Origin: Lama glama
Lineage: Eukaryota
Reading direction: 5' to 3'
Assembly: GCA_028534125.1 (NCBI GenBank)
Contig: CM052837.1
Location: forward strand, 868,001 to 932,000
DNA: 64,000 nt
The position numbers and the translations under genes are program-made. Below the pieces are notes generated by a model. That model saw nothing but the letters and a program-made list of their open reading frames with translations, ran no database searches and was not told the origin of the DNA. Of the stretch, positions 2,805 to 3,052 are shown piece after piece. Positions within the stretch are counted from its first letter, which is position 1. Each line of letters opens with the position of its first letter.

Positions 2805-3052
2805 CACACCAGCAGCTGTGCCAACCCCAGCCTCCACGGCTGCCTCTCCGACAACGCCCGCCTGTCGTCCCAGGGTTTTCTGCCTGCGCTGCTCGCTTCT
2901 GGAGGCCGCAGTGGCGCAGAGGGTCACCGCCCTCGAGAGCAGAGGAGGGATGGGAGGCGTCTGCCCCCCAGCCCGGTTCCCCTGCCGGCGGAGCCCAGGC
3001 ACCCAGAACCCAGCCGCTGCAGGTCCCCCTCACCAGGACCACCACCTTCTGA
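2805..3052 (+). pseudogene. SSTR4: Somatostatin receptor 4 pseudogene remnant (TM7, helix 8 and C-terminal tail only; frameshifted)
   Basis: Pieces from three frames ([28 protein letters not shown]...[30 protein letters not shown] at 3050-3052) match the human SSTR4 C-terminus [58 protein letters not shown]. Position and orientation are syntenic: + strand, convergent with THBD, about 10 kb away. Confidence 0.88.

Follow-up and report, generated by a model that had tools for sequence, protein, structure and literature searches.

The window analysed here, a stretch of 64,000 nucleotides from Lama glama, contains the genes described next on the minus strand and the remains of another on the plus strand. 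Thrombomodulin (THBD) is present as an intact single-exon open reading frame (ORF) of 579 amino acids at 13408-15147 (Pfam THBD, 7.6e-29). The main coding exon of CD93, the C1q receptor, occupies 31912-33999; it was assigned by its Pfam domain set and by matches to the PDB entries 8ivd and 8a59, both named "Complement component C1q receptor" (E-values 3.7e-160 and 7e-110), and its listed ORF begins upstream of the true start. At 2805-3052, on the plus strand, lies a frameshifted remnant of the seventh transmembrane helix and C-terminal tail of the somatostatin receptor gene SSTR4. The remnant and THBD are arranged tail-to-tail, 10.3 kb apart, with CD93 beyond. In human, the gene order is SSTR4, THBD, CD93, LOC200261, NXT1, GZF1 and NAPB (PMC3592476). 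The preliminary description of this DNA had placed the remnant at the syntenic site of SSTR4, convergent to THBD, and both neighbours agree with that placement.

Several other features of the window can be described briefly. The THBD protein is identical to Vicugna pacos thrombomodulin at 576 of 579 positions, compared with 84-94% identity to Camelus entries and at most 76% to other mammals. The three residues differing from the alpaca RefSeq protein are L213P, N418S and P448S (window>alpaca), and an exact look-up in a collection of 15 billion proteins did not retrieve the window's THBD protein. By these THBD comparisons the DNA comes from a New World camelid that is a different individual from the alpaca reference or belongs to a sister species. 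Ten ORFs of at least 200 amino acids in GC-rich DNA match no Pfam family and are probably chance ORFs: 4109-4834, 6079-6846, 37542-38231, 38252-38968, 42203-42934, 47897-48583, 57981-59321 (minus strand), 59093-59842, 59782-60534 and 62160-62765. An assembly gap of 100 N is located at 39039-39138.

Reading of the three forward frames over 2700-3060 (frame defined as position modulo 3) resolves the remnant into four consecutive pieces. The first, at 2805-2873 in frame 0, encodes 23 residues of helix 7 and the start of helix 8, and was recognised by phmmer matches in PDB. The second, at 2872-2990 in frame 1, was assigned by direct reading as the proximal C-terminal tail; its 40 residues include an 11-residue run, the motif TALESRGG and a further run of 10 residues. 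The third, at 2991-3017 and again in frame 0, reads EPRHPEPSR and represents the distal tail, placed by frameshift-aware alignment to the printed human peptide. The fourth, at 3020-3052 in frame 2, supplies the final 10 residues and the native stop codon TGA, the last eight residues and the stop being identical to the human end. Three frame changes separate these pieces: one of +1 near 2873 and two of -1, near 2990 and near 3018. The preliminary description had counted at least three, of which two can be seen in its own list of pieces. It had also reported that the NPxxY motif is degraded to NPSLH, and the codon at 2835-2837 does encode histidine in place of tyrosine. The region has a GC content of 63%. 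In the six-frame translation of the complete window, the short motifs SCANP, LSDN and LTRTTTF occur once each. With three frame changes, NPSLH and undetected helices 1-6, the locus offers no continuous ORF of a class A G protein-coupled receptor (GPCR) with seven helices, DRY and NPxxY.

The receptor origin of the first piece is apparent from the PDB search with 2805-2873, in which all 17 matches were somatostatin receptors of subtypes 5, 1, 4 and 2, with a best E-value of 0.019. The piece shares 15 of its 23 residues with SSTR5, and its identity to the receptors is about 65%. An 18-residue signature of helix 7 in somatostatin receptors is present, degraded by the tyrosine to histidine change in NPxxY. 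When a longer query of 65 residues in the same frame was used, the PDB alignment again opened at residue 41, corresponding to window position 2805, and the preceding 40 residues stayed unaligned. The Pfam family 7tm_1 was not detected even in this accepted piece. The string PFVT at 2783-2794 (frame 2), which we take to resemble the start of helix 7 in human SSTR4, was considered as a further trace of this helix; the PDB search gave it no support and it is not claimed here. A variant site lies within the first piece at 2808, where the window has A and all four compared sequencing runs have G. The G allele changes the codon from threonine to alanine, and alanine is the residue of the receptor consensus Y-A-N-S-C-A-N-P; the window allele is therefore probably derived.

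Helix 7 does not by itself separate SSTR4 from SSTR5 or SSTR1, and it is the C-terminal tail that distinguishes the subtypes. Human SST4 residues 366-388 have been printed as a 23-residue peptide and described as unique to SST4 in a study of an SST4 antibody (PMC8657703). Frameshift-aware alignment of this peptide, with its stop, against 2900-3060 matched 2991-3052 to human residues 369-388 and the stop codon, introducing a single shift. The alignment score was 62, as against 25.2 +/- 4.3 (maximum 44) for 300 shuffled peptides, none of which reached 62. In this alignment, EPRHPEPSR (2991-3017) corresponds to EALQPEPGR, human residues 369-377. A cysteine codon at 2983-2985, within the second piece, can be matched with C366 of the printed peptide. 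The last eight residues, PLTRTTTF followed by stop, are identical to human SST4 381-388, and the subtype-specific ending of nine residues and stop is represented by VPLTRTTTF at 3023-3052. In the literature searched, the heptapeptide LTRTTTF appears in four papers, each of them concerned with SST4 or SSTR4. Neither tail piece gave a receptor match in PDB, and the middle piece at 2872-2990, including a run of 29 residues, is the weakest of the relic; it and the 5' edge of the relic rest on short alignments. The reading of this middle piece and the putative loss of a segment EEEPLDYY presumably agree with the human SSTR4 protein; a literature search for EEPLDYY returned nothing. A helix 7 of somatostatin receptor type, a C-terminus and stop specific to SST4 and a locus convergent to THBD with CD93 behind it together support identification of the relic as the SSTR4 orthologue. 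Helix 7, C-terminus and synteny thus bear out the preliminary description, which had seen at 2805-3052 a fossil of SSTR4 helix 7 and C-terminal tail, with the pieces at the same positions.

The remaining helices 1-6 would be expected within 801-2804 (plus strand), where they would take up about 930 bp. This DNA is single-copy, with a depth of about 1x in the DNA sequencing runs, and carries no recognisable receptor sequence. Searches of 20 stop-free forward segments from 1413-3099 against Pfam, with E-values up to 10, revealed no GPCR family, a weak test given that the accepted helix-7 piece was missed as well. The PDB search did, in contrast to Pfam, pick up the helix-7 piece, and it yielded no receptor match for 2121-2339, 2192-2497, 2343-2525, 2529-2681 and 2702-2830, which represent part of the three upstream frames. 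No stretch of 19 residues with mean hydropathy of at least 1.6 was found in any forward frame of 1-2830. The earlier statement that helices 1-6 cannot be recognised in the 2.8 kb upstream holds by all three approaches, with Pfam covering segments from 1413 onward and PDB covering part of the frames. Further left, 201-800 is a high-copy interspersed repeat. Each of the three DNA runs has a summed contig depth of about 1e5 there, as against 12-34 in the flanks, and numerous short contigs terminate within the repeat. As no receptor signal is detected upstream and 801-2804 is single-copy, deletion is the best reading of the missing 5' part. A large 5' deletion is thus most likely, a view based on missing signal and not on a breakpoint mapped across species.

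Most of the stretch is contained in 15 of 24 listed sequencing runs. We compared the window with contigs of three DNA runs (X1, X2 and X6, from three studies with three organism codes) and of one RNA-library run (X16). X1 and X2 each cover 616-6000 with one contig and X6 covers 631-4992 with one, all with identity of at least 99.4%. The X6 contig differs by 27 substitutions and by gaps at two sites, 747 and 3441. Neither site falls in the relic or at its 5' boundary, and the contig has no insertion or deletion over 748-3440. X1 and X2 have three inserted letters each, somewhere in 616-6000 at sites that are not listed individually. Inside the relic all differences are substitutions: every one of the four runs has 2808 A>G, and X1 also has 2945 G>A. 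The lesions, like the absence of the 5' part, are therefore seen in the contigs of three DNA runs obtained independently, which answers the concern about assembly error raised in the preliminary description. One mark of a unitary pseudogene is that a copy at the original locus is disabled by lesions recurring in independent data, and X1, X2 and X6 together with synteny provide this here. The other mark, lack of a functional copy elsewhere in the genome, would be expected from the literature, in which no SSTR4 ORF is reported for even-toed ungulates.

The fourth run, X16, is an RNA library labelled "reproductive system metagenome". Its contigs, which are of low depth and differ from the window by about 5%, are found at 919-3150 and 4463-5827, and one of them, spanning the relic, is colinear with the window over 2541-3150. 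This colinear contig indicates that the truncated arrangement also exists in a related species. The X16 contigs may represent intergenic transcription in a related camelid or carry-over of its DNA; evidence from the runs consists of contigs and permits no reliable statement on expression.

Three other explanations of the relic have to be weighed. The relic could derive from a different paralogue (SSTR1 or SSTR5) or be a copied fragment, instead of the SSTR4 orthologue. The helix-7 piece indeed gives SSTR5 and SSTR1 slightly higher scores than SSTR4, but the tail ending in PLTRTTTF and stop, as in the peptide called unique to SST4, and the neighbouring THBD and CD93, which fit the SSTR4 locus, make this origin highly improbable. 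Just as improbable is that the gene only looks broken because of errors in sequencing or assembly. A region with 63% GC belongs to a class prone to indel errors; for an intact gene, however, three separate shifts and a missing 0.9 kb would all need to be errors, in the face of agreement among independently assembled contigs from three runs and three studies, of which X6 shows no indel in the interval around the relic.

The third explanation concerns the 5' part alone, which might never have been deleted: it could have decayed in place beyond recognition, or have been displaced to the left of the window by an insertion. The high-copy repeat at 201-800 would be compatible with displacement, the searches against somatostatin receptor structures covered part of the upstream frames, and the deletion is read from missing signal. 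Against this, helix 7 and the tail are still about 65% identical (15 of 23 residues), and helices 2, 3 and 6, being better conserved, would be no harder to recognise if they were present; 801-2804 is single-copy DNA and not an inserted repeat; and the hydropathy scan found no hydrophobic 19-mer in any plus-strand frame. Retention of the 5' part is on balance improbable, though less so than the two explanations above.

We consider it very probable (about 90%) that 2805-3052 represents what decay has left of the 3' end of SSTR4, a single-exon gene, at its ancestral site in the genome of a New World camelid. According to this reading, about 250 bp survive, running from midway through helix 7 over helix 8 and the C-terminal tail up to the original stop codon. 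The remnant is broken by the three frame changes, and its NPxxY tyrosine is replaced; roughly 0.9 kb encoding the N-terminus and helices 1-6 would be gone, most likely through a deletion ending just left of 2805. The reading presumes deletion rather than extreme decay, the lack of another SSTR4 copy in the genome, and an old loss, which would be common to other camelids and, following the literature, to all even-toed ungulates and cetaceans. The preliminary description had proposed a unitary pseudogene created by a large 5' deletion and decay; the relic, synteny and independent contigs support the pseudogene, while the deletion itself keeps the more cautious standing given above.

Human SSTR4, a single-exon gene of 388 amino acids located beside THBD, agrees with the camelid relic in the helix-7 motif, in PLTRTTTF and stop, and in gene order and orientation. 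Unlike the human gene, the relic lacks the N-terminus and helices 1-6, contains three frame changes and has NPSLH for NPxxY. Losses of SSTR4 are known from other mammals. SSTR4 was reported missing in dog in 2009 (PMC2651185) and is also absent from the dog gene list of PMC3560075. In dog, SSTR4 is absent while SSTR1, 2, 3 and 5 remain (PMC2651185), which shows that this subtype can be missing from a mammal; the dog belongs to another order, Carnivora, so its loss is independent, and in dog only absence has been reported, with no relic.

The same gene and the same kind of event are treated in a 2024 survey of 202 mammals (PMC11367936, BMC Biol 2024;22:186), which reports that even-toed ungulates, cetaceans and a number of further orders lack an SSTR4 ORF, and which gives a PseudoIndex above 2 for SSTR4 in 104 of the 202 species, and complete erosion of SSTR4 on the cetacean stem. 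That even-toed ungulates, among many mammals, have lost SSTR4 was thus already published in 2024, which settles a question that the preliminary description had left open, and the published loss should extend to camelids, which are even-toed ungulates. By the same account, the description of the loss as "lineage-specific" was too narrow, as the report takes in all even-toed ungulates and cetaceans, with further losses in many other orders. In the article texts searched, no passage names camelids together with SSTR4. What is new here is only the contig-verified description of SSTR4 remains in a New World camelid.

Two further suggestions are more doubtful than probable. Pigs, ruminants, hippo and whales, as well as the relative represented by X16, might share both the 5' breakpoint near 2805 and all three frame changes; if so, a single deletion on the stem lineage of Cetartiodactyla would account for them. 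It might be, instead, that reproductive tissue still transcribes the relic within a non-coding RNA.

No receptor can be produced from the relic, and somatostatin signalling in this animal would consequently proceed through the other subtypes. SST4 is a studied target for pain and inflammation, and species lacking it are therefore knock-outs made by nature and ill suited as models for drugs acting on SST4, a point already made for even-toed ungulates in the 2024 literature.
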